Source: Oculina patagonica | Lineage: Eukaryota | Direction of reading: 5' to 3' | DNA: 64,000 nucleotides | NCBI RefSeq assembly: GCF_052425735.1 | Contig: NC_135770.1 | Location: 26,164,001 to 26,228,000 of the forward strand | In this document: positions 1 to 58,754 of the stretch, piece after piece | Layout: the number at the start of each line of letters is the position of its first letter | Numbering within the stretch: position 1 is the first letter of the stretch | Notes under the pieces: generated by a model | What the model was told of the DNA's origin: nothing | What the model saw: only the letters and a program-made list of their open reading frames with translations | Database searches by the model: none | Program-made: the position numbers and the translations under genes

Positions 1-180
1 TTAGATGATAATACTCCTTACGACTGGCTACAGATTGACTTCGGAAAAGTCATTGAAGTTTGTGGTGTTGCTACTCAGGGAGACATAAATAGCAATGAAT
101 GGCCAATAGAATTCAAGCTGCATTTCTCATCTGATGGTAACAACTTTAAAAGGTATAAAGATGGAAACGGTGCAAAAATG
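1..180 (+). CDS. Gene A exon: F5/8C domain 1, first half (partial)
   Basis: LDDNTPYDWLQIDFGKVIEVCGVATQGD...; donor GTAAG at 181. Confidence 0.88.
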
Positions 181-3100
181 GTAAGATTTGATCGTATTTA
201 TACAGAAAACACAAAAACTGAAACGTTTCTGTAAAGGTCGCATAACTGACCAGTCCAGTTGACCGGGATTTAATTCAAGGAAAGAAAATGGCGACAGATA
301 AAGTTGCATCGCTCGCGACTATCGTAGCTTTATTGACAAGTGTAACTTTAGTAATAAATCTTAAGGTTATTACCATACTTCTAAAGTGGAAATACTTAAA
401 AGGCAAAATTATGACATTATGACCGCCTACTTGCGAAAGCGAAGCTATTTCACCCCCTAAAACGCTCCATCCCGGTAACCGGGCTGGAGTGACACGGTTG
501 CAGAGATCTCGGTAAACGGGTTGCCTTCACATATGAACACGTCCACATCGAAATTTTTACAAAGAAAATAGGAGTGAGGCGAGATCTCGGTAACTGGGCC
601 AGCCCATGCAACCGGGTTCATATGAAGAAGCCCTTAGAAGGTCTCTGAGTTGCCCTTTTATTTAATCTTTATATTATTACCTTTAAGATATTTCACAGGG
701 AAGGTGACTCTAACACGGTTGATCAACACCAACTACCAGTGCCAGTGTATGCCAGATACGTTCGCTTCTATGCAATGAAGGTTCACAATGGGAATTGTAT
801 GCGAGTTGAGGTGTATGGCGCAGAAAGTTAGTTGTTGTTCATTTCTTACTGTTATAATTTGAATTGCGAATCAGTCTGACTTGTGACCTTGTGACAACCA
901 CTCAAAATTGGCTTGAACCGCCGAACCGCCAGAGTATAATAAATCTTCTATACAAGGCTTGTGCTTGTCTTTTTGCGAAGTTACGTACGGTAATTTCCAT
1001 GGAAGCTATAAATCTCGATGTTAATCTCATTAAATATTCAGAATGTCTGGAAGCTCAAGGTATGGAAAATGGCGAGATCTCTGACGAGCAAATTACTGCA
1101 TCTTCTGAATGGGATGTCGCTGAGGCCGCTATCCATGGAAGACTTCACTTTCAAGAATCGCTTTTTGTAACAGGTGGTTGGGTGGCTGCCACAAGTGATT
1201 CCAATCAATGGCTTCAAGTTGACCTGCGCAGTTTGTACACTAAAGTGACGCGTGTGGCAACCCAAGGAAGAGATGCCTTTTGGCATAGCAACTGGGTAAC
1301 TTATTACATGCTACAGTACGGTAACGACAGAGTAAACTTCCACTACTACAGGGAGATAGGACAAACAGCAAACAAGGTAACAGAGACTTTCAAATCAAAA
1401 TTATTCCGCCGTCACATTCGTGTTATATTACAGACCAAGCGAGCTTGTAACTGAAATTTAGGCTGGTAGGATAGACTGGGAGATTAAAAAATACCTCTAA
1501 CACGGTTTGAAAAATTCAATCTCTAATATTTTTTTGTTTTATTTTTGCTAATTCAGGAGTTTACTGGGAGTACAGATAAGAACACTGTCGTTTATCATGA
1601 TCTAAACCCACCAATCAGAGCGCGTTTCATTCGTTTTTTTCCACTTGGTTGGCACATCTGGATATCAATGAGGGTGGAGCTGTATGGTTGTCAAGGTATT
1701 TATCATCATAGNNNNNNNNNNNNNNNNNNNNNNNNNNNNNNNNNNNNNNNNNNNNNNNNNNNNNNNNNNNNNNNNNNNNNNNNNNNNNNNNNNNNNNNNN
1801 NNNNNNNNNNNNNNNNNNNNNNNNNNNNNNNNNNNNNNNNNNNNNNNNNNNNNNNNNNNNNNNNNNNNNNNNNNNNNNNNNNNNNNNNNNNNNNNNNNNN
1901 NNNNNNNNNNNNNNNNNNNNNNNNNNNNNNNNNNNNNNNNNNNNNNNNNNNNNNNNNNNNNNNNNNNNNNNNNNNNNNNNNNNNNNNNNNNNNNNNNNNN
2001 NNNNNNNTTGCTTTATTTGCATGACCGTTACCGTTTACAGTGTTGCAAAAGCATATCTAAACTAAAAGTAACAAAACGATCCTATTATATCATACTAAAA
2101 CTTGATTAAGTTACATCGCTTTCACCTGATAATAACAATGCATCACGTAAATTCATACATGAAGAAATAAACTTCATAACTAGCTTATTAACATGATAAT
2201 CATTAGAGTTCATAAGAAGTTTAATGTTTTCTGAGGTTGTTTTCCTTTCAAAGTCAGGTACTATCTCATTGATTCGTTTTAAGAATGTCCGCCTTTGGGA
2301 AGAGTATTTGCTACAATCTAATAAGAAATGTGTTTTGTTTTCTACTTGATTTGACTTGCACAATGGACATAATCTATTTGCTCTGGGTATATGGTCAGTC
2401 TGATATCTACCCAGTTCAATCATAAGTTTGTGATTACTTAATTTAAATTTCACAAGATTTTTTCTTTCATTAAAATATCTTAACTGTTGTAAATAATCAG
2501 ATGCAACGTATTAATTTTTAAAAACTTTAAAAAATTCTAATTTCCTTGAGTGTTCTAGGCTATGTCGCCAGAAAGATATATATTTCTCTTTCATATTGGT
2601 TGTGTATCGTTTAATTCTATAATTATCTAAAGATTCCGGGTCGAAATTGGGGAGATGGTAGTGTTTTATTAAATTCCAAAAATTGGAATAAAATCCGGAG
2701 TTGTTGATAGAGTGTAAGTTCTTTGACATAAGAAAAGATTGTTTGACAATTGAGTCGTTGTCTTTCTTGTTTAGATAGACAAAGTATTTCATAATTCTCT
2801 GGTAAATTAAAGGTACACCCTTGACGTACATAATTCTCTGGTAAATTAAAGGTAATCTTCCAAGTTCCGCTCTACAAGCTATGTTCGAGGCCTTATTGTT
2901 TACTTCTAAGTACCGTTTACAAAATTTGAGATGAATTTTTTCTATTGGGGAACTATCCCAAGTTTTAAAATTCTGTTTCATGTACATCCCCCATATCTCA
3001 CTGTTGTAGCTTAAGATAGGAAATATCATTGTGTCAAAAATTTGGGATGCAGTATTAGGTCTAAGTCTATTAAGGGTTGAGTGTTTTCGTATACTAAAAA

Positions 3101-6100
3101 AGGCATGCATCGCTTTTTCTTTTAAGTGTTCGAGTGCAAGAGTAAAGTTTCCCGTTGGGGTTAAACGTGTTCCTAAATACGTGTATTCTTGAACAATTTT
3201 CAATTGATTCAGTGCCTATATTGAAGCTGATGTCAATGGACTTTCTTTGGCGTTTTTGAAATATCATTATTTTTGTTTTCTTTGGATTGATTTTTAGCAT
3301 CCACGTTTCGCAATAGGACGAAAGGACGTTTAAACAGTTCTGCAATCCAACTTTGGATCTTGATAGTATAATCAAATCATCTGCGTACAACAGGGAGTTT
3401 ATTTTTGTTCCATTTGGAAGTACAAATGGATCAGATAGAGTGTTTTCAAATAAATATGGCAAATTATTTATATAGAGATTAAATAAAAGGGGGCTTAGGA
3501 TACACCCTTGAAGTACACCTCGTGAGTATGCGAAAGATCGTGTTTTGTTTTCTCCGACTCTTATTGAGCATGAAGAGTTGCAGTAAAGGCTTTTAATTAA
3601 ATTGTAAAAATTTCCTCCTATGTTCACTTTGAGTAACTTATAAAATAATCCCTCGTGCCAAACGGAGTCGAAAGCTTTGCGGAAATCTACGAAGCAAGCA
3701 TAGATTTTCTCTTTGTGGTAGTGGACATATTTATCTATTAGGGTTCGTAAGGTAAAAACATGGTCTGCAGTGCGGTTTTCAGGCAGAAAGCCAATTTGTG
3801 AATTATGTAAAATCTTGTTGTCTTCAAAATATAAGTATAATCTTTGATTCAGAATGGAACAAAATAGCTTACCAAGACAACTAGAANNNNNNNNNNNNNN
3901 NNNNNNNNNNNNNNNNNNNNNNNNNNNNNNNNNNNNNNNNNNNNNNNNNNNNNNNNNNNNNNNNNNNNNNNNNNNNNNNNNNNNNNNNNNNNNNNNNNNN
4001 NNNNNNNNNNNNNNNNNNNNNNNNNNNNNNNNNNNNNNNNNNNNNNNNNNNNNNNNNNNNNNNNNNNNNNNNNNNNNNNNNNNNNNNNNNNNNNNNNNNN
4101 NNNNNNNNNNNNNNNNNNNNNNNNNNNNNNNNNNNNNNNNNNNNNNNNNNNNNNNNNNNNNNNNNNNNNNNNNNNNNNNNNNNNNNNNNNNNNNNNNNNN
4201 NNNNNNNNNNNNNNNNNNNNNNNNNNNNNNNNNNNNNNNNNNNNNNNNNNNNNNNNNNNNNNNNNNNNNNNNNNNTAGAAGTAGCAGAAACAGTAGCAAT
4301 AGCGGTAGCGGTAGTGGTAGCGATAGTGGTTGTGGTAGTGGTAGTGGTAGTAGTTGTAGTAGTGGTAGTAGTTGTGGTCGCTGTGGTGCTAGAATTTATT
4401 TTGGCAAAAATAAATTGTTTTTCAGCAATTTTATTCAACTAATTAAACTTTTAAGCTACTCTGTGTAATTTTTCGAACCAATGACACAAAGTTTCTCCTT
4501 ATTTATGTAAATTTATTAATTTAATCTCCTCACAAAAGTACCCTTTTACCCCCACGCAAGAGTAGTACAATGCTAACCGTGGAAGGCCTGATTTTTTAAA
4601 AAGTTAATCATAGTATTTTAAAGAAAGTGCAGTTAAAGTTTACCAAGGCCCCTAAATAAAATAGACTCAAGACGCATTTGAACAGCGTTAGTCTCAATAT
4701 GAAGTAAAATATTTGAAAATACAAGCAAGAATTACTGATTTGTAAAATAATACACTGCGGAGAATATGTGAATAGTTCATGTTCTCGCTGATAATTGTAA
4801 ATATTTCACTATGAATCGAGACCAGCCTTGTGCCTATGCATCATTTTCAGCGGCCTTAGTTAATTCAAAACCTGACTATCACATAAAAATGGCATCTTTA
4901 TTGCTTCAAAATAGGTTTAGCATTGTATTATCTATTTCAATCAATCTCTTTATACTGTTAGAATGTCAAAACGCTTTGGGCATGGAGAACAAATTAATAT
5001 CTGGTGGGCAAATCACTGTCTCTTCTACATGGGGTAGCTCTCATCGCGCGAGTTACGCTAGGTTGCGCCTGACGAAACCAAAAGGCTCTTGGGTAGCTGC
5101 CACAAGTGATGCTAGTCCTTGGCTCCAGATTGATCTGGACAGTCAGACCAGGAGTATAAGTAGTTTGTATAGTGTCTTGTCAGGGTGAGAGTAGTTCTAA
5201 AAGGAACTGATGTTGGCGACTGACAATTAGACAACCTGAATGGAAGTCATCTTTAGAGTTAGGGCCAATTGAATTGAATTGCGGGTTGCTCAATGTCAAG
5301 CACGCCGGGCCAGTGGAACGCTTGATCAAGCGGCACTCTTGAAAAAACTTTTTCCTGATTTATCCGATTGAGCTCAAATTTGACACAATGATAGACCTTT
5401 TTATCCCAAACAATCGTATGATTTTTGTTTTTTGAATTATACGGTTTTTGGCGGAAAAATGACGTCACGGTGCTGAAGGAAAATTTTCATTTTATTGTTA
5501 TGATCCAAAAAGTACATTATTCTGAAAGACCTCGCTGAGATAAAGTGAAATGCGAAAAAATTACTGAAAAATCTCAATCCGTCTTGAAGATATAGAGTTT
5601 GAAAATTTGAATTTCCCGCCATTTTGTTACTATTTTTAGAACAATTACAAAATTCAAATCTTTATATCTTCAAGGCGGATTAAATTTTTGAATAATTCTT
5701 TCGCATTTCACTTTATCGTAACGTCTTCTTTCAGAATCGTGTACTTTTGTGCCATAACAAGGGAATAAAAATTTGCCTTTAGTACTGTGACGTCATTTTC
5801 CCGCCAAAAACCGTTAATTCAGAAAAACAAAAATCATTCGATTGTTCATTCGATAAAAAGTTCTATCATTGTGCCAAATTTGAGCTTAATCGGATAAAAC
5901 AGCAAAACGTTTTTCCGAGAGTGCCGCTTCATGCAAGCGCTCTGCTGGCCCGGCGTGAAGTGGAATATTAAGTGCGAATTTCCCCACACAATCGTCGGCT
6001 TACTAGCTGTCGTCGCGAGCGCTATTTCGCACCGATATTTTATCTAATTTTTTTTGTAAGATTTAGATAGATAGTAACTTTATAAACTTGTCAAAATAAC

Positions 6101-9100
6101 CACTTTATTAACGATTTACGATGTTATTGTATAAACAATTAGATCAATTCTTCAATAGTCAACATTTCAAAAGATCATGAAAACGACACCACATAATTTT
6201 CAAGACTTTGTAGTGAACAATTTTCTTCTCGCAGCTCGAGGCAAAATGGTGGAGTAGTACATCACTATAAAGAACATTTGCACATCTGGGGGACAGGGCC
6301 TCTGTAATTCTAAGCAGTTTATCTATACAATGCCCGCCCAAATTCTAACGCTCGTATAGAGCGACTACATTATAAAAGAATGTTGGCCATGGGAAATTTG
6401 GTCGATTTGTTAGTAACCGAAACCTTTAGTTACTTTTGTTTGTTTCTTAGAATTTATATTTGAGGATAAATTTATTTTTAGTTAACGGATATTTAAATTA
6501 ATCTTGCCAGACCTGACTCGTCCCAATTAATCAATACTGCCACAAAACGATATCTGCTTTCCTTAGGTAGATTTATATTAATAAGAAATGCCAGTAAGAC
6601 AATCCCTAACAATTTCTATACTAATTAATTTAGGTTTTTAGTGCAAACACCGACAGCGACACACCCGTTTATCATGAACTCGACCCACCAATCAGGGCAC
6701 GTTATATCCGTTTTGTGCCAGTGTCTTGGTATACCCACAAATCAATGAGGGTGGAGCTCTATGGTTGTCAAGGTACTGTAAAAGGTTTTATAATTTATTA
6801 CATCTTTGCTGCAGCTTATGATACCTAAGACTGGTATAATTTCTATTAAAAGGTAGCGGTCAATTATCAAACGGTTTACCATAATATATCTGGCCACATG
6901 GTATTATATTTACCAACTGAAAAGCAGTGTAGGTAAATGCGTTATTATTAAGCCAAGGAAGTTAGAAAGTCGGCGTTTTTCTGTTACAGTGCTTTAGAAT
7001 TCTCAAGACTGTGTGGGCATAATACCTTACAAGATTTCTATATAAATCTATATAGCCTATGAATACAGGGATCGTACGGTAGGTGTGGCAATATACTTAT
7101 TTGCGTCAATGATCAATTGATGACAAAATCCTAAAGACACGACAGTAAAAAATACTTGTTAAAATTGCCTCAAAATCAAGAACTGTCGTCGAGTTTTGTT
7201 AGAAAACTGCCCCACACTCAAGAACTGTCGTCAAGTTGCGGCATTTAATTTAAACCCTTACCGGCCATAGTTGACTCTTGAGAGAAGACATGGTTTGCCT
7301 AGCCTAGCTCCAACCATGCTCCTAGAAGCTGACAAGACACTTCTTAAAAGGAAGTTTACGATAAAACAATTGGCCCTCGAATAGTGCTTTTAACGCCAGA
7401 ATGCAAGTTATCATCATTTTGACCTCTTTTCTTCGCTTGCATACTGGTAATACATAAAAGGTGCGCATTTATTAATGAGTTTTAAGTTTTCGCTTGTACT
7501 TGTTTCTGCGTAGAGTAAGGCTGACCTATTCGTGAAAATGTTTTAACAATGGCTGATATATATTTCAAATTTCGATACTTTTTGTAATTAGTCCTTTTTT
7601 GATAGATTTTTAAAAGTAAGTAGTAGACTTTTCATTTCATGTAAGTGTCACTCGATAATTCAGTTTCTTTTAACTGCAAAAGAGGTTAAATAAACTATTA
7701 TTACTATATCCGCAGATGTGGACGAATGTCAAAATCTGACACACAATTGCCATGCTGTGCTTGCCCAGTGTAGCAACAATGTTGGTTCATTTGAATGCAC
7801 TTGCCTTCAAGGATACACGGGAGATGGCGTGGATTGCTATGGTATGCATGGGTATTCATCCAATTTTCTTCCTAGGTGAAAGGGAATGGGAAGCTAATAA
7901 CTCTGTTTGAATCCCAACTAGGGATCAAGTTTATGATGTATTACCGAAGTAAACTTTTTCAATGACAAGGAAGGATCCACGATTGAAACATACAGGCTAC
8001 CCGGCTTCTCTCACTATCCTGAAACACTCACCCTCATTTGTTGTTTTGCAGTGGCTTCTAGACCTGCGTCCTGATAATGTAAGGAATGTATGAAGTTTGG
8101 AGGCATGCCACGTGAAACGTTTTACTGCCTCTCGGATGGGGAGTGTATGACAGTGTCTCTTTTTAAATGCTTCTTCCGTTGTAATTCAATATAAAGTTAT
8201 ATTAATATCCAAAATTTTCTCTTACAGATATTGACGAATGTGCAACAGCAACTCACAACTGTCATGGAGTGGCTAACTGTTACAACAATGAAGGTTCTTT
8301 TACCTGCGAGTGCCGAGACGGCTATATTGGCGATGGAATATTGAGTTGCGAGCCCCTCGGTAAGTGCAAATAATGTTTCCAAGGTCTGTAAGCGCGTTCG
8401 TACATTCACCCTTTTCGCGCATCGTATGCAAACAAGGACACTGACTTGCGATTGGATTAAATTCAACTCGCTACAGACTGACAGTCTAATAGACAGACAC
8501 ACAGACGGACGATCAGACAGACTGCTTCAAAGAATGACAGGCTGACTGACTGACTTGTGCTCTAAGTGGCTTGGCTTTTAATTTTTTTTTACTTCTTTCA
8601 TAAATTTCAATCGGCAGGAGACTTCTCAGTAACCATAAGAGACATATCTAAGGACAAGTACCATGCCACTGTTGTCGACCGGTCCGTCAAAAGTGTACAA
8701 GAAGCAATAACGCAAGGTCTAAACAATGATCTCGCTGTGTTGTCAAGTACCATGGAATGGCGTATCATTAGTGAAGCAGAACTTGCTGCTTCAGAGTCAG
8801 CCGATGGAACTTTAGTAAGTCAAGGGACAAATGAGTGGACAATAAACAGGAGATCCATATCCGCTGGTATCTATCAAGTCAAATTCACGGCTACATACAC
8901 AATCGGTGATCTTTCCCACTCAAAGAATGTTACTGCCTTTGACTATGGCTTTATTGAAGTCATTCCTGGTCTAGTACGAGCCGTCATCGACGGAGGAAGT
9001 AGCGTTCGTTGGGGGTCCACGGAAATTGTAACTGTTGACGGCTCATTGAGTTATGATGGAGATATTGGCCCTGGAGATCATACCGGGCTCATTTTTTCTT

Positions 9101-12100
9101 GGTCATGTTTTGATGCGAATGACACTACTGTTATCAGCAATGATTGCTTCGGTTCTTTTGTTGGGGAATTTAATGACTTTTCAAAATCCATTAACATCGA
9201 TCCTGGCCAACTTCAAATTGGCAAAACCTATGTTCTGAGGCTGAATGTTTCCAAAGATGACAGAAGATCGTTTCGGGAAATGACGTTTGAGATAGCAGAA
9301 GGAGAGGTACCCCATGTGTCACTAAGGTAAATGTTAATAGCACACTTTCATTGGGGGGCAAAGCGAAAGACGTTTAGAAAAACAGAGTTGCGTTTTTGGG
9401 CAGGGTAAAGTTATTAAAAATTCATAGTATATGGCACTTATTCGTGCACCATCATGTTTAGCTAATACAACTTGAATGTTGCAGCAAACAATAACCATTT
9501 TTTACATATCTCATCATTGCTTTTCACGCATTGTTAGTTTTTCTCTTCTTCTAGTGAACTCATGTCTTAATTATTAGTCGATAAGTGCAAGTAGGTCCAC
9601 ACTTTACAATATTGTTTCTTTTTTCAATCTATTGTAGATGCTTTGTAGATTGTGGTGTCGTTGTTTCAGCTACCAACAAGCTCCGAGTTACATCAGAATG
9701 CGCAAACTCTCCATGCAATGGCTCAGTTTACCAATGGCGATTAAAAAGATTCAATGACTATTCAAGCAATTGGGATGATGTACCTATATTACCTAACATG
9801 ACTTCAACTGCAGTAGATGCGACTAACATGGTTATCAAGAAGAACTCACTGCAGTCCAAATCCAAATACAGCTTAACGTTATACGTCACACCTCCAGGAG
9901 GAACAGAAGGTTTTGCCGTGCTGGATTTTGAGACAGCTGTGGCACCACACAGCGGGTATTGTACAGTTTCAGTCAGTGAAGGCGTGTCTCTTGAGACCGA
10001 GTTTACCTTCAATTGCTTTGATTGGCAAGATACAAGCAAACTTACTTATGAATTTCAACTTGGAGAAGAGCCAATATCCTATGGCAGCTCTCCACAGTCT
10101 GTGTCGACCGTGTTACCGGCGGGATCTTCAGAAGACGATTACCAACTACAAATCAACATCGTAGTCAAGAATGCTGTCGGTGTAGCGGTTTTAGTTAATC
10201 TTATTGTTAAGGTACCCATAAAATTGTGGATATATTTTCTGTCTTTGACTAACTAATAGGATAAGAACAATAACAATGCGATATATCGTTTCGTGGTATT
10301 CAGTACATACCCATGTATGCAAAATTGAAAAAAAAAAGCAGTCCGTTATTAGGTAATCGCCACTTCTTCATTTCAATCGATCCTTATTAGGGGAATTGAC
10401 CATCCTGTCCCAGATTAGACTCAATGACACACTCGCCTTTTACATCGTTGAATATTATTGGAAGGTCACTTTCAATTATATCAGTATCTTTAGCTCATAT
10501 GTCGTGAAATATATCAACCGCTTAACTTTCAGGTAATGTAAATGTCCGTTACGATAATAGTAACTGGCTCTCGATTAGTGCACGTGATTTACAGCTAGTG
10601 TCATTGGCAAGAACTAAAACATTATTTTATGGGGCAAGGGGAAGGGGGCATCAACAGGTGTCCTTACTAAAAAAAAAACTGGAAGCAACTTTAGTGAATA
10701 TGCACTAAGAAATATCTATAGGCGTACTGACTTCATAAGAAGCCTGATAACTATTTTTCTTGACCATTTGGCTAAAGATAAAAGGTACCGATTACGTAGC
10801 AGATATCTTTTTGATCCTTGCTTTGTTGGCCACTTTTCGGTCGTAGGTTATAGCTTTATTGTTCTTTTGCAGGTCACACCACCGTCCTCGCTTGATCCTT
10901 GCCTTTCATCGCCAGATGCAGTCGCAACCAAGTTAAAAAGCTATGTAATCGGCGAAGGTAATAAGCTAGACGGATTTCTAAACAAAGGCGAACTCAGTCA
11001 AGCTCTTCAGCTCTCCTTGTCCGTCTTGAAGATTGCCAATGAGGAGTCAGATTGTGGACAAACATTGGACCCGGATGTTAAAAAATTGGTGTGTTGACGT
11101 AAACGGTACCATGTTAGTTAATCACTTATCCATGTTACTTTATATAATAACCTGAATTCTACGCGCATTTTGATTGGTTCCTACTTATGATCTATCAGAG
11201 TACAGACACATAGTTGACGTCACGCGGTGGTGTGACTCGTGCGCGTGATCAGAGTTCATTGTCCAAATCAGAGTTGTCGGCAAAGTTTTTAAAACTTGCG
11301 GGGCCACAACAAAGCAAAAAAGTTCAGCTTAATTACAAATCTTCAGTGAGAAACAATACGCCAAGCATCGTTCACCTTTCGAAGCATTTAACTGGGCGAA
11401 ACAAGCTTGAAGAAGACAGTGAACTATTCGAGAAATTATCCGAAATCTGTATGAAAGTTTGACCGGTGTTGTACAGTTGGACGACGCCACGGGAAACAAA
11501 CGAATTGCGGTTGAACGTTTCGGTTATGTTTACAGATTTGAACAACTTTCCAAATTGGAATAAAGGTTAGTTTTTTCATTGACTTTCAATTGACCATTTT
11601 TCTGTTTATTCAATCGGATTAGCAGTGCTTCGTGTTAACGAAAACTTAATGGTGAAATCAAAACAACTTAGCTCATCTTTACGGCGGCATTGCTCAAACT
11701 GAAGGGTGCCGAAGTCTTGTGTTATTATATAAAACAAATAGATTCCATTTTGCCGTGGGTCTGTTCAGTTATAGATCACAGAAGACGTCAAAATGTGGTA
11801 TGAACATCAGTGACCCACTCGGCTAGCGCCTCGTGGGCCACTTCTCTGTTCATACCACATTTTGACGTTATCTGTGATCTATAACTGAACAGACGCACGG
11901 CAAAATGGAATTTATTTGTTAATTGTTAGCTTATCTCTCAACACTTAATTTATTTAAACACAACACTACATCTTTCTTATAGCTCTCACAGAAACAAGTG
12001 TTTTTAAATATTGTTTCTTTACCTTGTTTTTAGATCTCAGAAACATTAATTGTGAAGTTTACAACTATAACACCTGCGAGTCTTGACATGTCTCGCTTGG

Positions 12101-12233
12101 TTTTGCCCGTGGTTAGTTTGGCGATGGGTGGCGGAGAAGGAAGCGGCAGTAATAGCCTGGTAAATCTTCTTCCTAAACAAAGCTTATCTCACTTCATCAC
12201 TATTTATCTAACATTTTTCTATCCATTATTTTG

Positions 12234-12276
<43 letters not shown>

Positions 12277-15200
12277 TCCTGCCTAGCTGTGCCTGTTGTC
12301 AATTTCGCGCGCAAAATAAGCAAATACATGTAATAGGTTTACCATCACCATCTATCTGCGAATTATTACGAAGTCCATAATGTACGATTTCTTTCATAGG
12401 AATCAACAATGCAGATGACAGAAAAGACAGCAAACATGATTACTGACACCCTTAACGACTTAGAGGAGCCATTTTCTCCTGTTTTGGAGCTGACGGCTAA
12501 GAGTGTTACAGGATGTCTTACAAATGTTCTTCAGTCTGCAGCAGGTGCAGGTAAAGCGGAAGGAGCCTCGCCATCCCCAGAGGTATAACGAATTACCGAA
12601 GTTACTTTCGCAATTGTATATTTACATCTAAACCAAAAAGGCTTTATTGTTTACTCCCTTTTGAATGTAAACATTTTGCGCATTGCTTTTTTCGAAACTA
12701 GAAAAAATGGTTTAAGTATTTTTTATTTTCCGAGCGACATAAACAAAATAATACCTTATTATACCTTATTACATGACATTTTCGCGACACTTTAATTTTG
12801 CGATTTTGAGGAGCGCATATTTAGCGTCATTCAAATTTTGCGATTTTGCGAAAATTAGTATTTTAAATCACTTTAATTTCGCGTTGTTGAGTAAGACCCT
12901 ATTTACATTTCCTTAACAATATCATTCGACGTTTCCTAGGCCTTGAATTAAATAAAACGACTTTATCATAGGAACCACAACGTCAAAATAAGGAACAACG
13001 CAACGGCGGAAAAAAGAGTCAACAGTAACAACAGAACAGTTATCAGTCTTCTTGTTCTCTCCTTGTTCTTGCAGAATCAATTGAATCAATTCTTTCCTTC
13101 AGTACTACTTAACTCGTTCTTTCTTGATTATTGACATAATGCGAGTCGCTAAATTACAGTTAAATTTACGCGTCATGTTATGTTTAGGACACTTACTGTT
13201 CCCGTCACTTATATTTCGCGATTATTTTTGAATCGCAAATTCGCGAAATTAACATGTCGCGAAAATTTCATGAAATAACGCAATCTATTTTATTAGTTTG
13301 AATTTCAAGCATGGAGATTAGTTGCTGAACGACGAAATCTCTCCTTTTTGTTACAGTTCGTAAAAAAGGCTTTAGGTAAATTGAGCAACATGAGCGATGC
13401 ATTCTTTGGCCGCTTGGTTCCAGCTGAAGACCTTGTCATTAAAACAACCAACTTAGCAATATCTCTGAAGAAAGTGTCCGCTGACGATGTAAAGGGACTG
13501 GGTATGGAAGAAGGACCTTCAAAGTTTAAGCTACCAGGCAACCTTGGAGATATGGGTGGTGAAAACATCAATGCAAAGGTAATAGACCGTTTTATTTTTT
13601 TTGCGTTCAAGATCGTGTTGAAGCCTTTGTACAGCACTTTATTTGAGGCGATAAAAAATATTTTGAAATGCTTTTTGAAATATCGTAAACTTCCACAAAA
13701 AGCCTTTCATCATCAAATTCTAATAGACCATAAACCCCCTCTCTATGAATGCGCCATGTTCGTATATTCTTATCTATTAATGAAAGATATACTTTCCCTT
13801 AGCTTGATTTGTGCTTTATGTTGTGCTATTTTTTTATTAGTTTAACAATGAATGCAGGACTTTTGTTCCATATCGTATTTTTTTTTTCAGAACTTTTTTT
13901 TGGCAATGAGCGACTCTTGTATCGCATTTTGCGTGTCCAAGAGAGGCCCGCAACTTCGACCAAACTGCAACGGCCATTATCAAGTGGGCTTAAAATTAAG
14001 AATGCCTGCAATGTAATGCTATAGTGACTTGGTGAAGGTTATTAAACTCGTTATTTAACTCGCGCGCATGGAATTATTTTTAAGTAGTGTTTCTTTGTCA
14101 TTATGAACAGACAACATGGAATATTCATCCCTCGAATAAGTCTGTTTCCTTTTTCAGATGCTGGCTGTTAATTTCAACCCCTTTACATGGGACCAGAGCA
14201 GCAAGAAAGTCAAATCAAGTGTCACCAGTCTCGATCTTCATAGTGGCAATGGGAAAATAATTAATGTTTCAAATCTTGATAATGACATTGAGATAGTTAT
14301 ACCGATTTCCAGTCCACCAAAAAACAACAGTAACGGAACAGAACACAACTTTCTAAAGCCAAACAAAATTTCCATTCGTAGTTATTACGCAGAACTAGCG
14401 GATGTTCCTGTTTCTATTAAAGTCGGTGTGCAGGAAGAAGGCGCAGTTATTGAATTGTTTGTTAAATTTGGATCAAGACCTACGATCGAAGACTCTGACC
14501 ACAACTTTACTGTTACATCAACATGTTCAAACCAAACAGATGACAAGCATAACGAAACATCCTGCCTTCCTGAAGAGAGTTCCGTAACAGTTGTCCCACC
14601 TGAGCCAGGTCGTCTCTATGTTGGTCTGTTGTTTTTGGGAGCTAATACTACAACTGAACATTCCAGGAGGCGAAGATCATGTTTTGGCCATGTTCGTGAA
14701 AGACGGTCATGTGTTGGCTTCAAGGATCCGCCACCTAAAGGAGTCTATAAAACGGATGTTCCACAATATGACCCATTAACAGATGTTAACTACACGTTCA
14801 CTATTAGCCAATCAAGTTGCTTGTATTGGTCTGAAGATAAAGAGAAGTGGACCTCCGATGGCTGCAAGGTAAATTAAATTAACGTCATGTCTTTAGTCAT
14901 CTTTTCATTCTGGTTAAAAAATGACTAAGATCAGGAGCTTCCATCTCACCAGAAAAGGATATGTTTAGATCTAGTTTCAGATAAGTCATCGATCAACGTT
15001 CCTACTGAACTCGTTTCCGGGGTGCTTAAAGGTTTAGACAGGGATCGAAGGAGGCGCTGACAATACTGAAATATAATACCTGTTGTCATTGCAAACAGAT
15101 GTAATGAGAAAACCTCGATCAGACTTCTGGCAGAAATAGAAGATCAAGCGAATAAAACATACAATCAATGTTCCTCTTCTAAACACTGTTACTGACAAAT

Positions 15201-26588: not shown

Positions 26589-26607
26589 TAAATTTCCGTT
26601 AAAAGTT

Positions 26608-42800: not shown

Positions 42801-45800
42801 ATTTTTTTCTCTGCCAGAAGCTTTCTTTGATACAGTTACGAGGTATATTTGTTCAAGCATAAACAGTTAAATTTAAAATATATATATAATTTAACATACC
42901 TACACACATGGTGCCGTTATAACGGTATCCCGACTGGATGCACGAGCAGTTGTATGAGCCTACAGTATTGACGCAGTACGCAGATACGTGACAGTCATAT
43001 AACTTTTCGACACATTCATCTACATCTAAGGAAAGAAAGCATTTGAAGTTACAACATTAACAACCCTGCATAAACAAAATATACAATAACGCAGGTGATG
43101 CAACTGCTTTCGAACCTTCCACGATTCTTTCTTTTGTATAATTTTAATAAAGTATTTCAATCTTAATTCTAAAACCTCCCTCGGTACATTTTCTATCACA
43201 ACTGTTTGTTCACGGTACTTCATTATGTCAGGCTTGGCAAAGCTTCAGTATGTTTACAGGTGTTGAGGTCGTTTTAGTATACCTGAATCGTCTTGAAATT
43301 AATTTGAATCAAAGGAATGAAAAAAAGCCTAGACGGCAGACAGCACGCTTTCATACCATGACATAAGATCAATAGGTGACTATCTTATATTATATTATAC
43401 AGAAATCTACATGCCAAGAACAAAAGAGGTAATACGTTTAGAGTTTATTAACTGCACCCACCTTCACACTGAGGTGGAATACCAGCGAATCCACTTCCGC
43501 AGACACACGAAACATTGCTTCTCGTGTTAACGCAATGGGCTGGGAGACGACAGTTTGTCATGTCCGGATCAGTGCTGCAAACAGCGATTCCTTGAGTATG
43601 GACTAGTACAAAAGAAAAACCAAACGCAGTGGACGGTTTCAATTAGCCTCTTCTTCTTTTCATATTGCTTCTCTTTAAGCCCTAACAAATGTAGGTAAAG
43701 ACTTTTGCCCGGAGGAAAAGGGAATGTGCTCATGCCCATTTCCATGCGCGTGCTCTTGCTTACGCTCATGCGCACGCACATACTTATGCGTATGCTTACC
43801 CATACTCATGTTCATACCCATGCTGATATACCCATTCAGATGCTCGTGTGGCGGTTAGAACAGCTTGCGAAGAAAATAGCTTGTGGAGAACGCTAACGTC
43901 GTTAGTGAAAAACAAACTTAAGGTGGCTAAAAAATGCTGTAAAACATTCTCGCCCTTTGGCATTCTATCGCCGCTACGCCAAATATGTTGAGAAATAACT
44001 TTAAGTAAAAATTTAAATAGCCCTAACCAATCAACAAATGGATTTTTATTAACGACCAAATTCGTTGCAATGGCAACGCGAAAAGGCTTTTGAGGGTAAT
44101 AATTTCAAAGCGACCCGAAGAAAGTGAGTCTTAGCTTGTTAGTTACATACTTTTGGCACAACAGCTATATGTGACCCTCCACGGGAAAACAGTGACAAAG
44201 GTGATAACACGCTCACAACACGCTAACACAGCACGCTTAGCGTGTCTTGTGACACAGATATGCACATATTTAATCACTACAACAATGCAGGACACGCAAG
44301 CCTTGTTTCGCACGCTAAACCTTTTGTTTTGATAAGTGTGCTCGAAGTCACGTTTAGCGTGCGACCGAAGACCGCTTAGCGTGCGACTCGAAGACACGCT
44401 AGCATGCGACTCAAAGTCACGCTTAGCGTGCGAATCGAAGTCACGCTTAGCGTGCGATTTAACACGCTTGAACACTCGAGAACACGCTAGGGTTATGACT
44501 GAAACAACAGTCATTCAGTACAGATTATGTTTGGCAAACTTACGCACACGAGGAAAAAACGAAAAAATTAAAGCTATTTTCTACCGTTTCCCGGCCGTTT
44601 CCGAACCAAACTAGCCGTCAGTGTTATGATCAAGTCAACTATGAAAATGAGCGTAAACAATATTCCTTTAACTTACTTAAACTTTGTCTGGAAGAAACAA
44701 AGAAAGACTCATTTACAAATGCCCATTAAGTTTCAACTTCTTAGTGATCTCTCTTAATTTGCTCAGGCGTCAAACCGAACAGTATTCAGGGTTTTCACTC
44801 CCTGTTCTTGGAACACAAGTGTGAATTAAAAATTTTAGACGTCAACACAAATACTGCATTGACATAACTTAGTAGTTAGCGAATGTCAAAGCAACGACTT
44901 TAGGCAGACTTTTTCAATTAAGCTGGATTTCCACTGACGAGAAATTTTTTACATGTGTTTACGTAATGAAAAATTAGAGAAATGTATAACGACTTGGTAA
45001 CATGTATTCAAGTCGTTCTCCTGCTCTTTTGATTCTCTTAAAAGTTTTTTGTTTTTTCTATCGTACAGAGAAAGCCGCGAAATACTGGAATCGAATCTTC
45101 TAGCCGCGATACAAAAATGGCGTCGCTGACTAATCAAAACATAGCGAAAAGCTATAAGACTATTTTCGTTTTCGCGAAGGAATGGTAGGTTAAGAGCAAC
45201 ACGATCTTTCTTTATAAAGTAGACTGGACACGCTTTAAGTGCTCGCTTGCACGCCTAGTGTGTTGTGCTAAACACACTAGGTCAGCACAACATACTAGGC
45301 GTGCGAGCACAACACACTAGGCGTGCGAGCACAACACACTAGGCGTGCGGGCGAGCACACCTAGTGTGCTGACACGCTTTTTTGTTCGGCTACGCACGCT
45401 TTATTGTGTTTAGTGTGTCCTGTAAAACAAAGGCTTACTAATGAGGCAAGTTTCAGAACACGCTTTAAGCGTGCTAAAATCGAAATCTATTGTTTTAGAG
45501 TGGAAGCGTGTTGTGAGCGTGCTATCACCTTTGTCCCTGTTTTCCCGTGGAGGGTCACATATAGGGTTCGGCAGGGCTTCAGAGCTATGATGTTATTTTT
45601 TATAAATTAAATGATTCTTTTGTCGATCAGGTGATAAAGATAGTAAATAGGGTATTTTTGTACCTTTTGACGTTGCCATCGCAAAGAAGTTAAATCTCTT
45701 AAGGATTTGATCTTGTTCGCTGATAAATCGCTTGTTTTAGTTCACACGAAATATGTTTTCGTCACATCGTCGGGCTAGCTATACATACAAAAGATGGAAA

Positions 45801-48274
45801 CGTCTTAACTATCGTCTTAAATATTTGCATGATATGGTGATATTAAACTTACGAGCGTCGACGCATGATGCCTTTGATATGGATTCGGCCTTTGATAACA
45901 AATCGTTGAATTCTGTGGTTTGAAAAATATCTTCGTCTGTCTCAGTCACAGCCCTCATGTCCGCCATGTCAACATTACTACCAATAGTAACAGCAAAGAT
46001 ACGAGCAGCTTTGGAACGAAGGAGCTGTACTGTATCGGTTGTTGGAATGTAAGGCGGAGTCATACCAAGGTATTGAGCTTGTATTTCATAAGTTATCAAT
46101 ATCACTAATTTCTGGTTGTCGTTCAGAACTGGCTGATGAAAAATATTCATCATAAGCTAGACGAAATGCCAGGTCAATACGGGTTTCCAATGCAGCATAC
46201 GGGATATTGTCCACCGCAGTAGCAAATGACAATGCCGTTTTCTTAGAGCCTAACTGAACTTCGTTGGAAGCTTGACTGCTGAATGTTATAACAGCAGCTT
46301 GGCTGGTGGACTCTAACTCAAATCTGCTGGTCACAATCTTTATGAATTCTTTTTCTTTTACGTAATTGTCTGCTCCAACACTCCCTGAGGCGTCCAGTAA
46401 AAAGATTAGGTTCAGTGGTGCTTGGCATTTTTCAGGAGCTGACAATAAGAAAAAAAAATCAACCATCGTAGTTATGTTTCAATTATTCCCATTTACCCTT
46501 TCAACGCGTTTAAACGCATTTTGTGAAGGAAAACAACTTCCCAGTTTCCATCGGGCATTCAAGTTGTGGAAACACGTGTAGAAACCTTTGTAAATCTAGT
46601 CTGCTGTGGTAGGCATTTCGCAAGCGCTTTTTCAAGTTCTTCAAAAAATGGTTTTCTAGAAACCGTATAAAAGGAACATGATAGAAGTGCTTTTCTTAAC
46701 ATAAGTGTGATGAAAGAAAAGAGAAGCTCGACGCTTATTGAGACTATCAAAATGCAAATCAAAACATCAGCAGTTTACGTCAGCTAGATGTCGTCATAGT
46801 TAGAACTACGTCTTTAAGCGTTCACTTTCTTACATGATATCATTTTAAATAATTGAAATAAAACTTAAATATAGCTTTTTTTGAGATCTGGTAATACCCA
46901 AAATGACCTTACGTTCCTCGGTGAAGGTAAAGAATCCGATCCAAACAACGCGTCGGTCAACGCGTGGGCCAACACACGGCCGACAGTCGACCGACACGTC
47001 GGCAACTATTTGTCATTACATGATATACCGAGGATGATTTCAAAACCTACCCAGGCAGACTGAGCCATTGCCAGAGTATCCAGGCACACAAGCGCAGTCA
47101 TAGCTGCCGTCATAGTTGTAGCAATACGCGTCTTTATGGCAAGCGTCTGGTAGAGATTGGCATTCGTTGATGTCTATATAAAAGCAATGTTAAAGGCAAA
47201 GATCGTTACTTTTAAGTTCTCAACCCATTCTTGTTAATCGGAATCCCCATAAAAGAAGAACGGGGTTTCGGAAAGGGGAATACTTTGTGGTCTAACAATG
47301 CAATTAGCCCAATTCTTGAAGGAACATACCTTAACATTAACAATGTGGTTTTCTTATTGTATGACACACTTTGTGTAGGACTTCTCAGATTGTAGTCCAA
47401 CTTAGGCTCTACTTATTTCTTTTTGCTTAGGACTATTGAATTATTGAAATACAGTTGCACCTCGATACAACGAAGGGCCAAGGGATTGGCAAAATATGTT
47501 CGCAATTACGACTTTATGTTATTTCGCTGTTCTTTTCCATATATTTTGCTATTCCTGTATAGACAGGAGGTTAGTTGAATCGAGGTCGGACTATATTATA
47601 GAATGTAACTTCAGAGCATCTTAAGAACGTTTTGTAAAAAAAAAAATTGTAAAAAAAAAGAAAAATCCGCGTCGTCCCGAAAGTAGACGTTCTTATAAAA
47701 AAAAGAGTGTAGAAATTGGAAGTATCGAAGGGAATACATAACCTGGTATTCAACCTAAATCCATGAGGTTACATACCTACACACATATTGTTGATATAAC
47801 TGTATCTGTATCCCGGCTGGTTGCATGAGCAGTTGTATGAGCCTGCAGTGTTTACACACGAGGCAGAGACATGGCAGTCATGTGACCCATCGGCACATTC
47901 ATCTATGTCTAAAAAGAGAGTTTGAGAAGAGACAAAGTTGTTTATCATAATTTGTTTTTGCTTTTTTTCTTTATATTGTCAAAAGCAGTCTCTGTTGTAA
48001 GTCAAATTTCAGAATAACGTTTGGCATAAATGTCGTCAAAATAAACCAGGATATATATGACACAGCGAATACCACACCCGTATTTTCTCCGTAAACAAAC
48101 ACAAACAAAACGTGTAACAGATTATCTCAGATGGCAAGCGCAGAATGAAATCGCTTCAACTACAAACACTTTGGAACTTTAAATGATCTTCTACCTTTCA
48201 ATTAACGTCACTTAACAGAGGTAAAAATAGCCACTAAATGTGCGTTTTTATATATATATATTTTTTATCACTTG

Positions 48275-48334
<60 letters not shown>

Positions 48335-51300: not shown

Positions 51301-54300
51301 CAATTTCTCGAACCTCCAATGGGAAAAAATTACGTTCAAGAAATCGGGGGTAAAACTAGACACATAAATTTGTCTGGAAAACGGCGCCGTTGTCAACGCG
51401 AGAGTTTATAGACAGATGAATGGGAAACTTAAGACGCGATTACTAGACTATTTTCCCGTAAAGTCGTAGAGATCGATCGTTGAGTTCGACGGGCCGTCAA
51501 CTTGGTTCCAGAACGGGAGCGAAAACTGGGTAGAGTGCCAAAACCCTGTGGGTAGGGATTCGGGGTGTTTATACCACGGGCATTTTGCACTCTCCCCAGT
51601 TTTCACTCGCGTTCAGAAACCAAGATGGAGGCCTATCGATCTCAACGCTCGATCTCTACGACTTCACGGAAAAATAGGGGACTGTGAACAGTCTACGCGA
51701 TTACAGGCTTCTCACCCAGGCCACATTTCTCATATTTCATCAGTAAAATAATTTGCCTAATATCATAAACTCACGGCAGTTCATAAATTACGCAGAAATA
51801 CCATTCTGACAAAGGTATTTGACCTTGGAATCCCTGAAATTCCGATAGAAAACTCCAAATTTTGCATTACGCATTGTCCCATTTTCAAAACGCGAAGAGG
51901 ACGATAATGTCTCCAGTCTCTGTATTCCTGTACCTTCGCTTCTGCTTAAATTCCTGCTGTCCTCACTATTCTTACGCTCAATCTCGTGCGTAATCCCATG
52001 TGGTAAGACAGAACTTAAATCATAGTTAATAGAGGGAAATGGTTAGGAAGCAATAAAAACATCAAAGGAGCAAACAAAAAGGGGAAAGATTTCGGTTGGA
52101 AGATCCATGACCGTGTACATCTTTTAGTGTTTTTCGCTCATACACTATGCATGAGTTACGTAATCGCAATATTTTTACTGGTTGGTTGCATGAACACACG
52201 TAACCACCTATTGTATTTTGTCAGGTTTTTGTACTGTCAACCCCCAAAATAGCGAACAAAAACCTTCAACGAAGAACTTTATCGGGCTTCATTACCATTT
52301 CCCTCTATAGACTTTGCTTAAATGTAAAGTATTTGCACAGTATTCTTGGTTTGCAACCACGTGACAAGGCGGCCATGTTGGATGACAAAACAATAAAACA
52401 TGTTTTGGCGGAATTTGCATAATAAAAAAGTTTAGTTCCCAACGGAGGAGAACGCTTTGTTCCTGTCATCCAACATGGCTGCTGTGACGTCAGCTGCAAA
52501 CCAGCAATACGTTAAACTCACGAGCGTCGATGCATGATGTCTTCGATATCGAGGCGGCCTTCGCTACCAAGTCGTTGAATTCTATGGTTTGAAAAATATC
52601 GTCGTCTTCTTCAGTCACGTCTCTCATCATATTCATGTCAATATTACTCCCAATAGTAACGGCAAAGATACGAGCAGCCTTGGAACGGAGAAGCTGTACT
52701 GTATCAGCTGGTGGAATGTAAGACGGAGTCATACCACCGTATATAGTTTGTATCCCATCGGTTAACAATATCACTAGTTTCTGGTTTTCGTTCGAACCGG
52801 CCGATGAAAAATATTCATCATAAGCCAGCCGAAGTGCCAGGTCAATACGGGTATAACTTGCAGGATACGGGATATTGTCGACCGCAGTAGCGAAAGACAA
52901 TGCCGTATTCTTAGAGCCTAACTGAACTTCAACGGATGCGTCATAGCTGAATGCAATAACAGCAGCTTGGCTGGTGGTCTCTATCTCAAATCTGCTGGTC
53001 ACAATCTTTATAAATTCCTTTTCTTTTACATAATTGTCTGCTCCAACACTCCCTGAGGCGTCCAGTAAAAAGATCAGGTCCAGTGATGCGGGGCATTGTT
53101 CTGGAGCTAAAAAAAAATAAATACAACACAAAATTCATTAAGCCAAGCATTAATGAAGGTATCGAACCCTTTAATAGCCTGCGAATACGTTTCGCACGTA
53201 GTAGCGGGAGCGAATGAGAGGCGGCTGTATTCGCAGGCTAACCCTTTAAAGATTGCTCAATTTTTCTTCATTATGTAATATCAACAGCTTGACTGAACAC
53301 TTTGTTATAAGCTAACTTCTTGGAATATTTATAATTTCATACATGACTGTAAATCTTAAATAATTCGAAAAATTGTTTATACATTTCGTGTCATCTTGTA
53401 ATAAACCAAAACTTGCTAACGTTACTCGGTCTCGTTTTCTTTATGTTTTACACAAAACTGTCAGGCGGCTGTGGATTTTAGCATTTTTCACGGTCATTTC
53501 TATTTTCCTCTTGCAGTTTATTCGTCGAACGTTGGCGAGTTGCCCTTTTTTGTTCAGTACTGCTAACAATAAGAACCAAGAACTCTTCTAACAACAAGAC
53601 CTTTCCATACTTTCCACCTAGTGGAATACTCACCAATACAAACTGTGCCATTGCCAGAGTACCCGGAAACACAGGTGCAACTGTAATAACCATTATAGTT
53701 GGTGCAATACGCGTCTTTATGACAAACATCTTTTAAAACTTCACATTCGTCGATATCTGTTTGAAAGCAATTATGGAAGGAAAAAATGTCTAAAAATAGG
53801 ATATAACGTTAGGGGGCTTTCACTTATTTGTGCATGTGGGGAGTTGACAAGATTGTGGGGGTTATTATATTTTGGGAAGCTAAAGAGGGGGAAGTGGTTA
53901 CAGCAAATTATTGGCAGAAAATAAATAATTAATTGATTAAAAAAACAGGGTGAATTACTGGGGGGATGTGACATTTCTGCCTACCAAGGAAGGGGGGCTG
54001 GGCAATATTTGGAAGCCACTCCAAGTGTTTTGCCAACCTCCTCTCTTCCCCCATACACTAATAAATAAAAGCCCCCTTACCGTGATAAATATTAAAATAT
54101 AACAACCCTTGTTACAGATTTCTCCATTTTTCTAAGAAAGCATCTGGTAAAATTTTTGTTCTTGACAAAGTTGATTGGTTTGAAAGATAGCTCGACTGCA
54201 GTTCATTGTGCGCTATTGGCGCGGAATATAGGAAGGTTTGTTCATTTGCCTTTTTCGCGCATAATTTAGATTATTTTGCAAATGTATTCATTGTCGATTT

Positions 54301-56079: not shown

Positions 56080-56153
56080 TGGTTGTTGTTGTTGTTGCTG
56101 TTATTACTATTGTTTTTGTTGTTGCTGCTGTTGTTGTTATTGTTGTTGTTGTT
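56080..56153. repeat. (TTG)n microsatellite
   Basis: Directly visible. Confidence 0.85.
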
Positions 56154-56780: not shown

Positions 56781-58510
56781 GGTGGCGAGGCGCGAGACTT
56801 TGTACTTGTACTAGCTTTTAACTTTCTCTTTAACTTTGTACGATATAATTGCGATGGCTTGCAATCGCCACGTATATTGAGGTTCAAGTGGTTTCAAACA
56901 TGTTTTAAAAAACTAGGCATAAGACTAGAAATATCTCAGTGCAGGCTCCATTAGCATGCTTGAATGCTACATACCACAATTTAAGTTTACGGTCAGGCGA
57001 CAATTATGTTTCAACGAACTAAGCATCATTTCGAAACGAAATTAAAATAATATTCATCATCCGATCAATCATGTTCCTGTTTTTCTTGACTGGAAGAAAA
57101 AAAAACTCAACAAACAAGTAAAACATAGTTTTAAAGAAAGCACAGATAAAACAACTCGACAGGTTTCACATCAAAAGTTATTTAAAACCAACGGCAAGAC
57201 AATTAAGCTAGACAGGAAAACAACTCTGGACAAAGATTTAAAACAATTTTGATAACATAAAACAAAAGAAAAATGAACTCAGCGACAAACATACTAGTTT
57301 CTAAAGTCAGCACGAACAAGGAAACTCCGTGATAGATCCAGTAGTAAAATCTAACTTTAAAGCCAGCGCAGGAAACTGACAACGCTGAATGTTCCAGCAA
57401 CAAAAAGATAGGTCTCTTAGCTTTGCACTATTCTTGATGAATGAGATCATAATTTGTGTTTTGGTGCACACACGAAGGGGCATGTCGCAACGACAAAATC
57501 ACAACATGTACAAAGACAAGAAAATTAATCAGGATCATGTTGCAGTGATACGTTTTACGGGATGTGTTGCTGCAATATGTACACGCTTCATTTTCTTGAA
57601 TGTATACATATTGTGAATTCTTTTCTGCTACATATCACTGTTACATGTCCCTAGGAAAAAAAAACTTCTTGTGTCAGCACTTTTAAGCTTTCCTCGGCTG
57701 GCAGTGAACACACGTTTTGTTTTTGCAACGGATTCAAATGATTCAATTTTGATATCTGTTGGAATCAGAAAGATCTCTTAAACTAGCCGCCTATCTTAAG
57801 TCATAGTATTTAAGAGAAAATGTTTTTGTACACCGCGCGTGAAAACAGGAAAATGCGGTACAAGCTTTGAAAATCGACTCCTTCATTTTTTGCTCAGAGA
57901 TACCTTATGGAGACTTAATAAACGTGGTGTATTTTTTTAGTTAAATCTTTTTTTCATTTTCGAGAAAATACTCAAAAATTATAACGAGCGCCCGCCGCCA
58001 TGAAATGCCCGAAACGAGGGCGACGAACATGGTCACAAGACTTTTTGCTCCTTAAAAGCGCAAAATGAAGAAGACCTTTCTCAAGTTTGTTTATTAGTAC
58101 AGGAGGCATTAACGAATGATTTGAGTCTAAAATCAGGATAATTAACTGAACTCTGAAATCCAGGCGAGCGTTTAAAAATCACCAATTTTCCATTGTTTAC
58201 AGATTTCATTTTGGAGCATTTTTTTCACGAAACACTTTTCTTATGCGGTATAACACAGATTTACCTAAGATTACGGCTAAGATAAGTAGAAATTATGTAC
58301 TTTTTAAGGATATAAAAATTTGCTTGGGGCTTTTAATATTATCCGAGAAATAGCCCGTCCTATTTCAAGGAAATCACTCGACAGCGACTTATGTCAACAA
58401 AGGAAATAATCGAATTACGTAGTACGCTTTCTCTTTAATAAAGCCAAAATTCGAACAAAATCCTATCGTTTAGCTCCAAACGAGTTAACTACTTTGTGTT
58501 TAACCCTTAC

Positions 58511-58754
58511 CTTGCAAAACAGAGGTAAAACATTGTTTTCTCCCTTTCTTTCGTAGGCTAATTGTAATTTCCCACGGGCAAGCGGCTATGGTACTCATGA
58601 CACAATTAGTCACTATTAGCGAAGCCCTCGTTAACATCGTATTTCTTGACAATTTTAACCACATTTCAGGTTCCAAGCGGCCGTTCATACAAGTTACTTG
58701 ATAACACGATGAACAGATCCACTTAACGAGGTTAAGAGCCCCAAAATGCGACAT
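58511..58754 (-). CDS. Candidate first coding exon of gene B
   Basis: ATG-initiated open frame ending caaG|GTAAGG in phase 1, which matches the next exon (G+GT=Gly); no convincing signal peptide. Confidence 0.4.

Follow-up and report, generated by a model that had tools for sequence, protein, structure and literature searches.

The prevailing view of PKD1-family proteins is that they link binding or force outside the cell to TRPP channels; their ligands are mostly unknown. The vertebrate PKD1L2, PKD1L3 and PKDREJ proteins and the PKDREJ-like proteins of amphioxus possess the same core with 11 transmembrane (TM) segments, combining the GPS, PLAT, TOP and channel domains, and are typified by lectin-type or adhesive heads; F5/8C (discoidin), CUB, EGF and C-lectin heads are also used by the amphioxus members. 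PKD1-like genes number five in humans and ten in the sea urchin, where SpREJ1-10 represent a lineage-specific expansion built with C-lectin, EGF, SUEL, WSC and PKD-repeat modules (PMC1934368). Proteins annotated in anthozoans as 'polycystin-1-like protein 2' (e.g. Nematostella LOC5520842, P0202 in our set) combine F5/8C domains, with or without EGF repeats, with the REJ, GPS, PLAT, Polycystin_dom and PKD_channel domains. Here we describe a 64-kb stretch of the 529-Mb genome of the scleractinian coral Oculina patagonica (hereafter the window; C13:26164001-26228000, 38% G+C), which contains two convergent genes of the polycystin-1 family, gene A on the forward (+) strand and gene B on the reverse (-) strand. 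We estimate a probability of about 0.72 that both belong to a very large and lineage-specific expansion of PKD1L2-like 11-TM receptors or channel subunits in this coral, whose heads consist of shuffled cassettes bounded by phase-1 introns.

A Pfam scan of stop-free frames recovered in gene A matches to F5/8C (1-231), REJ (8566-10253), GPS (15221-15466), PLAT (15573-16940) and Polycystin_dom together with PKD_channel (18957-20426), all on the + strand, and in gene B, on the - strand, matches to PKD_channel (26611-27888), PLAT (31125-32414), GPS (33065-33394) and REJ (39531-41517) in the core and to EGF_CA (41637-42020) and VWA (46089-46478 and 52493-53134) in the head. The REJ domain (PF02010) was detected with E-values of 8e-29 and 8e-33 in A and of 4e-29 and 4e-23 in B, the PLAT domain (PF01477), which lies directly after the TM1 exon, with 5e-17 and 1.9e-16 respectively, and the Polycystin_dom/TOP (PF20519) and PKD_channel (PF08016) domains of both genes with 1e-22 to 1e-29. 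The GPS domain (PF01825) of both genes has the characteristic motif (CLCNHLTSF in A and CRCNHLTSF in B) followed by a hydrophobic segment, and its cleavage is predicted only. The stop codons end at 20429 (A) and 26608 (B), placing the 3' ends 6.2 kb apart; gene A extends past the left edge of the window, its first F5/8C exon beginning 142 nucleotides (nt) upstream of base 1, and the head of gene B reaches to about 55.7 kb.

From REJ to the stop codon both genes are divided into the same 11 exons with identical phases (1>2, 2>0, seven of 0>0, 0>1 and 1>stop). The REJ domain is encoded by exon 1 (8618-9326 on the + strand in A and 41432-40655 on the - strand in B, the strands being the same for all core exons) and exon 2 (A 9638-10211, B 40197-39627). 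These are followed by exon 3 (A 10873-11088, B 39236-39033), exon 4 (A 12034-12159, B 38634-38509; 126 nt in both), exon 5 (A 12400-12582, B 36659-36459), exon 6 (A 13357-13578, B 36169-35921) and exon 7 (A 14158-14868, B 35505-34798); in gene A exons 3-7 (10873-14868) comprise the GAIN region, furin-like sites and the start of the GPS. Exon 8 (A 15221-15457, B 33394-33158; 237 nt in both) supplies the GPS and TM1, and exon 9 (A 15597-16913, B 32414-31158) the PLAT domain and TM2-TM6. Exon 10 (A 18400-18568, B 28480-28312; 169 nt in both) and exon 11 with the stop codon (A 18958-20429, B 27845-26608) encode the TOP domain and PKD_channel, comprising TM7-11 and a tail in A and ending in a short tail in B. 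The boundaries of these exons were set by GT-AG sites, phase, the open frame and conservation between A and B, and in gene A additionally by conservation with a neighboring copy located upstream (72-92% DNA identity); a custom spliced protein-to-genome aligner served only as a guide, as with distant homologs (25-40% identity) it produced many spurious micro-exons. The resulting core models are open throughout (1978 codons in A and 1912 in B) and have canonical splice sites. Exons 4 and 5 of gene A are conserved with the upstream copy, one of them differing by an in-frame 24-nt indel. The cores of A and B are 33% identical over 1918 aligned positions, with the large exons reaching 37-38% (exon 9, 38%). 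A further 126-nt exon that had been considered between 16913 and 18400 was dropped, that stretch being without a conserved exon; the real exons of this length are exon 4 of A and its counterpart in B. These Pfam domains and exon models agree with a previous sequence-only reading of the window, which had described tail-to-tail polycystin-1 paralogs with a common core and differing heads, and had noted the 11 exons from REJ to the stop, their shared phases and the three equal lengths.

In a simple hydropathy scan gene A displays 11 hydrophobic segments after the GPS, and its C-terminal tail of about 120 residues includes a heptad-like stretch. As a separate observation, core exon 7 of each gene encodes two basic furin-like motifs some 70 residues before the GPS, RRRRSC...RERRSC in A (14665-14715) and RVRRSC...RQKRDC in B (34990-34940), in which the basic residues are followed by a serine or aspartate and then a cysteine.

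The head of gene B is composed of 12 exons, ten coding for EGF and two for VWA domains, every one of which is of phase 1 at both ends. In the order of transcription on the - strand these are an EGF exon (55694-55572), an EGF_CA exon (53756-53634), the first VWA exon (VWA1, 53106/53100-52522, with two possible acceptors; Pfam E-value 5.6e-25), an EGF exon (50716-50576), three EGF_CA exons (49375-49250, 47908-47777 and 47173-47051), the second VWA exon (VWA2, 46438-45853; E-value 1e-16), an EGF exon (43602-43462) and three EGF_CA exons (43025-42900, 42475-42347 and 41992-41882). Within this array a cassette of four exons with the order EGF_CA-VWA-EGF-EGF_CA is present as a tandem duplicate with 68-79% amino-acid identity, the two VWA domains themselves being 73-79% identical. 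Inspection of the translation indicates that the metal ion-dependent adhesion site (MIDAS) of VWA1 is complete, with DASGS, YTRID and LTDG providing the DxSxS...T...D signature; the corresponding elements of VWA2 are DASGS, ETRID and ITYE, with the last aspartate replaced by tyrosine. The nearest solved structures to VWA1 are those of collagen VI alpha-3, the mussel PTMP1 and ANTXR2 (E-values 3.5e-19 to 2e-8). A candidate first exon of gene B was noted at 58511..58754 (-), with a strong phase-1 donor at 58511 and an ATG at 58754; it has no Pfam match, and the fetched sequence upstream of the paralog B' described below has no counterpart of it. Two stretches within introns of gene B may also be recorded. 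One is a strand-asymmetric region of about 1.7 kb within 29000-31000 (AT skew up to 0.78, G+C up to 0.65), which has several stop-free frames on each of the two strands, contains only a short tandem repeat of 25-26 nt and has no Pfam match. The other, in the intron between VWA2 and the next EGF exon (44146-45721), is a repeat lying under many mismatched contigs of high depth (up to about 140) from four sequencing runs, and probably represents a mobile element that is expressed or present in multiple copies.

The head of gene A, on the + strand, comprises three F5/8C cassettes, the last of them incomplete, followed by two EGF_CA exons. The first exon of cassette 1 (-142..180) has a phase-1 acceptor at -142 and a phase-0 donor at 180, and the part inside the window matches positions 31-87 of the Pfam profile (E-value 1.8e-11). 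Its second exon (688..826; 139 nt, phase 1 out) matches positions 89-127; the donor at 826 was present in the splice scan, while the start at 688 was absent from the acceptor scan and is taken from the spliced alignment to a single relative, P0257 (688-830). Cassette 2 has the same two-exon form, with 1042..1376 (phase 1 in; profile positions 1-89, E-value 1.8e-15) and 1557..1695 (139 nt, phase 1 out; positions 86-127). In cassette 3 the first exon (4962..5184) matches profile positions 1-45 only (E-value 8.4e-5) and has a phase-2 donor, a stop codon following at 5186, and the last exon (6634..6772; 139 nt) matches positions 86-127 (E-value 1e-8); no middle exon for positions 46-85 was found in 5185-6633. 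Inside the window the F5/8C profile (PF00754) is thus covered over positions 31-127 by cassette 1, over 1-127 by the two exons of cassette 2, and over 1-45 and 86-127 by cassette 3. The two EGF_CA exons, 7716..7841 (126 nt) and 8228..8359 (132 nt), are both of phase 1-1 and were both detected with an E-value of 1.9e-11. Runs of N are present in the window at 1712-2007 and 3887-4275. The last exon before the first of these ends at 1695 and is followed by a GT donor 15 nt ahead of the gap, and coding resumes at 4962. The junctions at either end are of phase 1, and both gaps therefore fall within a single intron of 3.3 kb (1696..4961), and the reading frame of gene A is independent of them. An extra phase-1 cassette may nevertheless be hidden in a gap of this intron. 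Between the two gaps there are also antisense open reading frames of 134 and 234 codons (2109-3215, -); these were considered as a reverse transcriptase and are not so called, being retroelement-like by eye and without a Pfam match.

Cassettes 1 and 2 of gene A each span two exons with phase-1 outer boundaries, and together with the EGF exons of A and all 12 head exons of B they uphold the earlier observation that every complete head module is bounded by phase-1 introns. Such cassettes have been duplicated, lost and exchanged without disturbing the reading frame. The passage from head to core follows the same rule, since in both genes REJ exon 1 starts in phase 1 and is preceded by a phase-1 EGF exon, at a distance of 259 nt in A and 449 nt in B; in neither gene does REJ exon 1 include its own start codon or signal peptide. 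From four small runs, contigs placed on 40600-46500 of gene B provide further clues: a spliced joint between 43025 and 43462, with GT..AG on the - strand, is present in two runs and equals the predicted exon boundaries, and another contig joint, from 45853 to about 43600, coincides with the predicted VWA2/EGF boundaries. These joints imply that splicing links VWA2 to the EGF exon after it and, in turn, to the EGF_CA exon that follows. REJ exon 1 of gene B is covered by a contig of run X1 at 40675-40879, and words of gene A exon 9 are present in RNA-like runs with shares of 0.35-0.46.

In the whole genome a REJ profile search recovered 110 exon matches, which manual clustering reduced to about 71 loci. 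C13 holds 33 of the loci, and 23 of them are located within C13:25.47-27.34 Mb, forming a 1.9-Mb array around the window. A search with the VWA domain uncovered a second convergent pair, A' and B', in this array at C13 26.478-26.540 Mb (C13:26478840-26539552, loci L003-L009), 0.3 Mb away from the first. Both members have the 11-exon core and keep the adjacency of EGF and REJ exons. A' (+) combines two F5/8C and five EGF modules with the core and is 82% identical to A over the aligned tree columns, while B' (-) combines at least three VWA and about 19 EGF modules with the core and is 86% identical to B over the same columns. Cassette counts thus differ between A (three F5/8C, two EGF) and A' (two and five), and between B (two VWA, ten EGF) and B' (at least three and about 19). 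As the order and orientation of the second pair are those of A and B, both genes were duplicated together, with changes in cassette number coming later. A tree of 32 cores unites A/A', B/B' and a third Oculina paralog in an unresolved group, in which the stem branches of A and B are long (1.0 and 1.2 changes per column respectively). This group is nested in a well-supported clade with members from Nematostella, Acropora and Montipora that lack any head recognized by Pfam, and the clade as a whole is sister to a clade of F5/8C-headed anthozoan proteins. By these comparisons of sequence A and B are old paralogs and not a recent inverted duplicate. The proposal of a common core is supported, while direct duplication of the one from the other is less certain, given the 33% identity and the unresolved group in the tree; that of a modular, exon-shuffled family is favored by the phase-1 cassettes, their varying counts in the paralogs and the duplicated cassette of B. 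Elsewhere in the genome, at C7:10.60-10.85 Mb, one strand holds a dense array of dozens of VWA domains, each encoded by a single exon and 30-40% identical to VWA1 of gene B. They probably belong to at least one giant matrix gene built of VWA repeats, and are a possible source of shuffled VWA exons.

Three word-indexed searches yielded 177 annotated proteins as relatives, a set that does not contain the window's own proteins. The closest of them, anthozoan 'polycystin-1-like protein 2' entries, show 31-34% identity, and those with an F5/8C head are 31-33% identical to both cores over about 1900 residues. Proteins combining F5/8C with REJ, GPS, PLAT and PKD_channel are annotated in Nematostella, Actinia, Oculina, Montipora, Stylophora, Exaiptasia, Pocillopora and Branchiostoma, and other members of the family carry CUB, LDLa, Fz, C-lectin, SUEL, WSC, PKD-repeat, fn3, SRCR, pentraxin or Ig modules in their heads. 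This variety implies that a modular head is a trait of the family and that the type seen in gene A is ordinary. The VWA domain (PF00092) was present in none of the 177 relatives, which leaves its absence elsewhere unproven as the word-indexed searches missed the window's own proteins, and no match to the VWA domains of B was found among 311 fetched proteins. A search of representative proteins for B-type proteins was swamped by LOXHD1-like proteins with multiple PLAT domains, and a MAFFT alignment of a full-length protein with the exon pieces of B came out scattered and was not used as a query; the closest B-like fragment, P0042, is on a contig of only 1.7 kb. Both heads had initially been set apart from those of the vertebrate members: novelty does not apply to the discoidin head, which is widely annotated in Anthozoa and amphioxus, and stands for the VWA head, with none among the 177 relatives. 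On its predicted architecture gene A is a further member of an already annotated discoidin-headed type, and gene B, together with B', would be a new VWA-headed variant of a known modular family, as far as this could be tested.

The above-described architectures offer several clues regarding a potential functional mechanism. By analogy with PKD1, the PKD1L proteins and suREJ, the proteins would probably be cleaved at the GPS, with the adhesive N-terminal fragment remaining tethered. Binding of a ligand by the head, or a pull on it, could then be transmitted to the 11-TM part, and this might gate, regulate or form part of a TRPP (PKD2-like) cation channel. In A the discoidin domains may bind glycan, lipid or collagen, while in B the MIDAS of VWA1 would be expected to bind an acidic residue of a matrix ligand. 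PKD1-like proteins have been reported in coral skeletal organic matrix (PMC4890752; bioRxiv 10.64898/2026.03.24.713908), in coral ovary transcriptomes (PMC7579821) and in the hair cells of Nematostella (PMC8846589). These settings make the roles put forward from the sequence, in the recognition of gametes, symbionts or prey or in sensing the skeletal matrix, reasonable but only candidate ones. A more specific and unlikely proposal is that the EGF/VWA-headed B and B' are a coral innovation, in which a MIDAS-dependent head binding collagen or matrix, on a GPS-cleaved, TRP-like receptor-channel, would serve calicoblasts or other epithelia as a direct mechanochemical sensor of the organic or skeletal matrix, the approximately 71 loci constituting a shuffled repertoire of such sensors.

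Several observations weigh against membership of both genes in an expansion of functional 11-TM receptors with cassette heads. The first exons of A and B were not located firmly. The hydropathy scan recovered for gene B only 10 hydrophobic segments after the GPS plus a weaker TM6, and its tail is about 40 residues long and without a coiled-coil-like stretch, which makes it doubtful that B pairs with PKD2 by a coiled coil at its C terminus. The runs that supplied the contigs are guessed to be RNA, their coverage is thin, and within 40600-46500 none of their contigs joins the last EGF exon of B (41882) to REJ exon 1 (41432). In the heads, a 1-nt frameshift interrupts VWA2 in the assembly (near 46107-46123) and F5/8C cassette 3 lacks part of its domain, so that some of the modules in both heads may be decaying.

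The alternative that survives best, and which we nonetheless hold to be somewhat unlikely, is that these proteins are mainly shed components of the matrix or of adhesion, their N-terminal fragment being released after cleavage at the GPS or at the furin-like motifs, of which each gene has two before the GPS. It draws on an Acropora digitifera protein with REJ, GPS and PLAT domains, which is found in the skeletal organic matrix and for which N-terminal shedding has been proposed (PMC4890752), and on the PKD1L2-like proteins in the skeleton proteome of Desmophyllum. However, the described Acropora protein has a head of WSC and PKD repeats, unlike that of A or B, and the complete and conserved TOP and PKD_channel domains of both genes argue for a function of the membrane part.

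It is quite unlikely that A, B or both are degenerating members of a fast-turnover tandem array, i.e. unprocessed pseudogenes or genes with partly disabled heads. This would accommodate the frameshift and the aspartate-to-tyrosine change in the MIDAS of VWA2, the missing middle of cassette 3 and the long stems of A and B in the tree, and about 71 loci leave room for redundancy. Against this, both core models (1978 and 1912 codons) read through 11 exons with canonical splice sites and without a stop, and the A/A' and B/B' pairs are 82-86% identical over core models derived from exons. The indel between A and its upstream copy, the sole comparison in which the conservation of exons was set against that of introns, is in frame. 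Over 46111-46202 two RNA-like contigs fall one base short of the assembly and hence lack the extra base at the VWA2 frameshift, which suggests that it is an assembly error or an allele, and a defective phase-1 cassette could in any case be skipped without breaking the frame.

Very improbable is that the head exons constitute a separate upstream gene, for instance one for a secreted matrix protein with VWA and EGF domains or for a protein with discoidin and EGF domains, with the PKD1-like genes starting near REJ: while the contigs of gene B never bridge 41882 and 41432, the intron after its last EGF exon, if retained, stays open to 41637 before reaching a stop codon, and VWA-rich exon arrays exist elsewhere in the genome as on C7 (10.6-10.85 Mb), this is countered by the phase-1 REJ exon 1 lying close to a phase-1 EGF exon without its own start or signal peptide, by the same adjacency in A' and B', and by the annotated anthozoan relatives in which F5/8C, EGF and REJ belong to a single protein.

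If A and B are members of a modular receptor family, as we favor, the combination of one constant core with interchangeable discoidin, EGF and VWA cassettes amounts to a set of natural domain swaps, with which it can be asked what the head contributes to such a receptor. The VWA type brings to this a metal-dependent site for matrix binding that is well understood and has obvious candidate ligands; the discoidin type adds little, being already annotated in many cnidarians. The scale is also distinct, with about 71 loci in this coral as against five genes in humans and ten in the sea urchin.

Compared with anthozoan 'polycystin-1-like protein 2', B has VWA in place of F5/8C, and relative to the F5/8C-headed anthozoan proteins A and B both fall in the sister clade, whose other sampled members lack a Pfam head. 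The vertebrate members differ in having C-lectin or SUEL heads and show about 25% identity, and VWA is present in none of the vertebrate and amphioxus set. The expansion is reminiscent of that of the sea urchin, which is likewise lineage-specific, with ten genes there and about 71 loci here and with different modules; C-type lectin domains of the suREJ1-3 type are not among the head modules of A and B, in which only F5/8C, EGF and VWA were found. For suREJ a role in sperm has been shown. Finally, VWA domains of the collagen VI, matrilin and ANTXR2 type are the best matches of VWA1, which retains the full MIDAS motif; in contrast to those proteins, the VWA domains of gene B are joined through EGF repeats to a polycystin-1-like receptor core.

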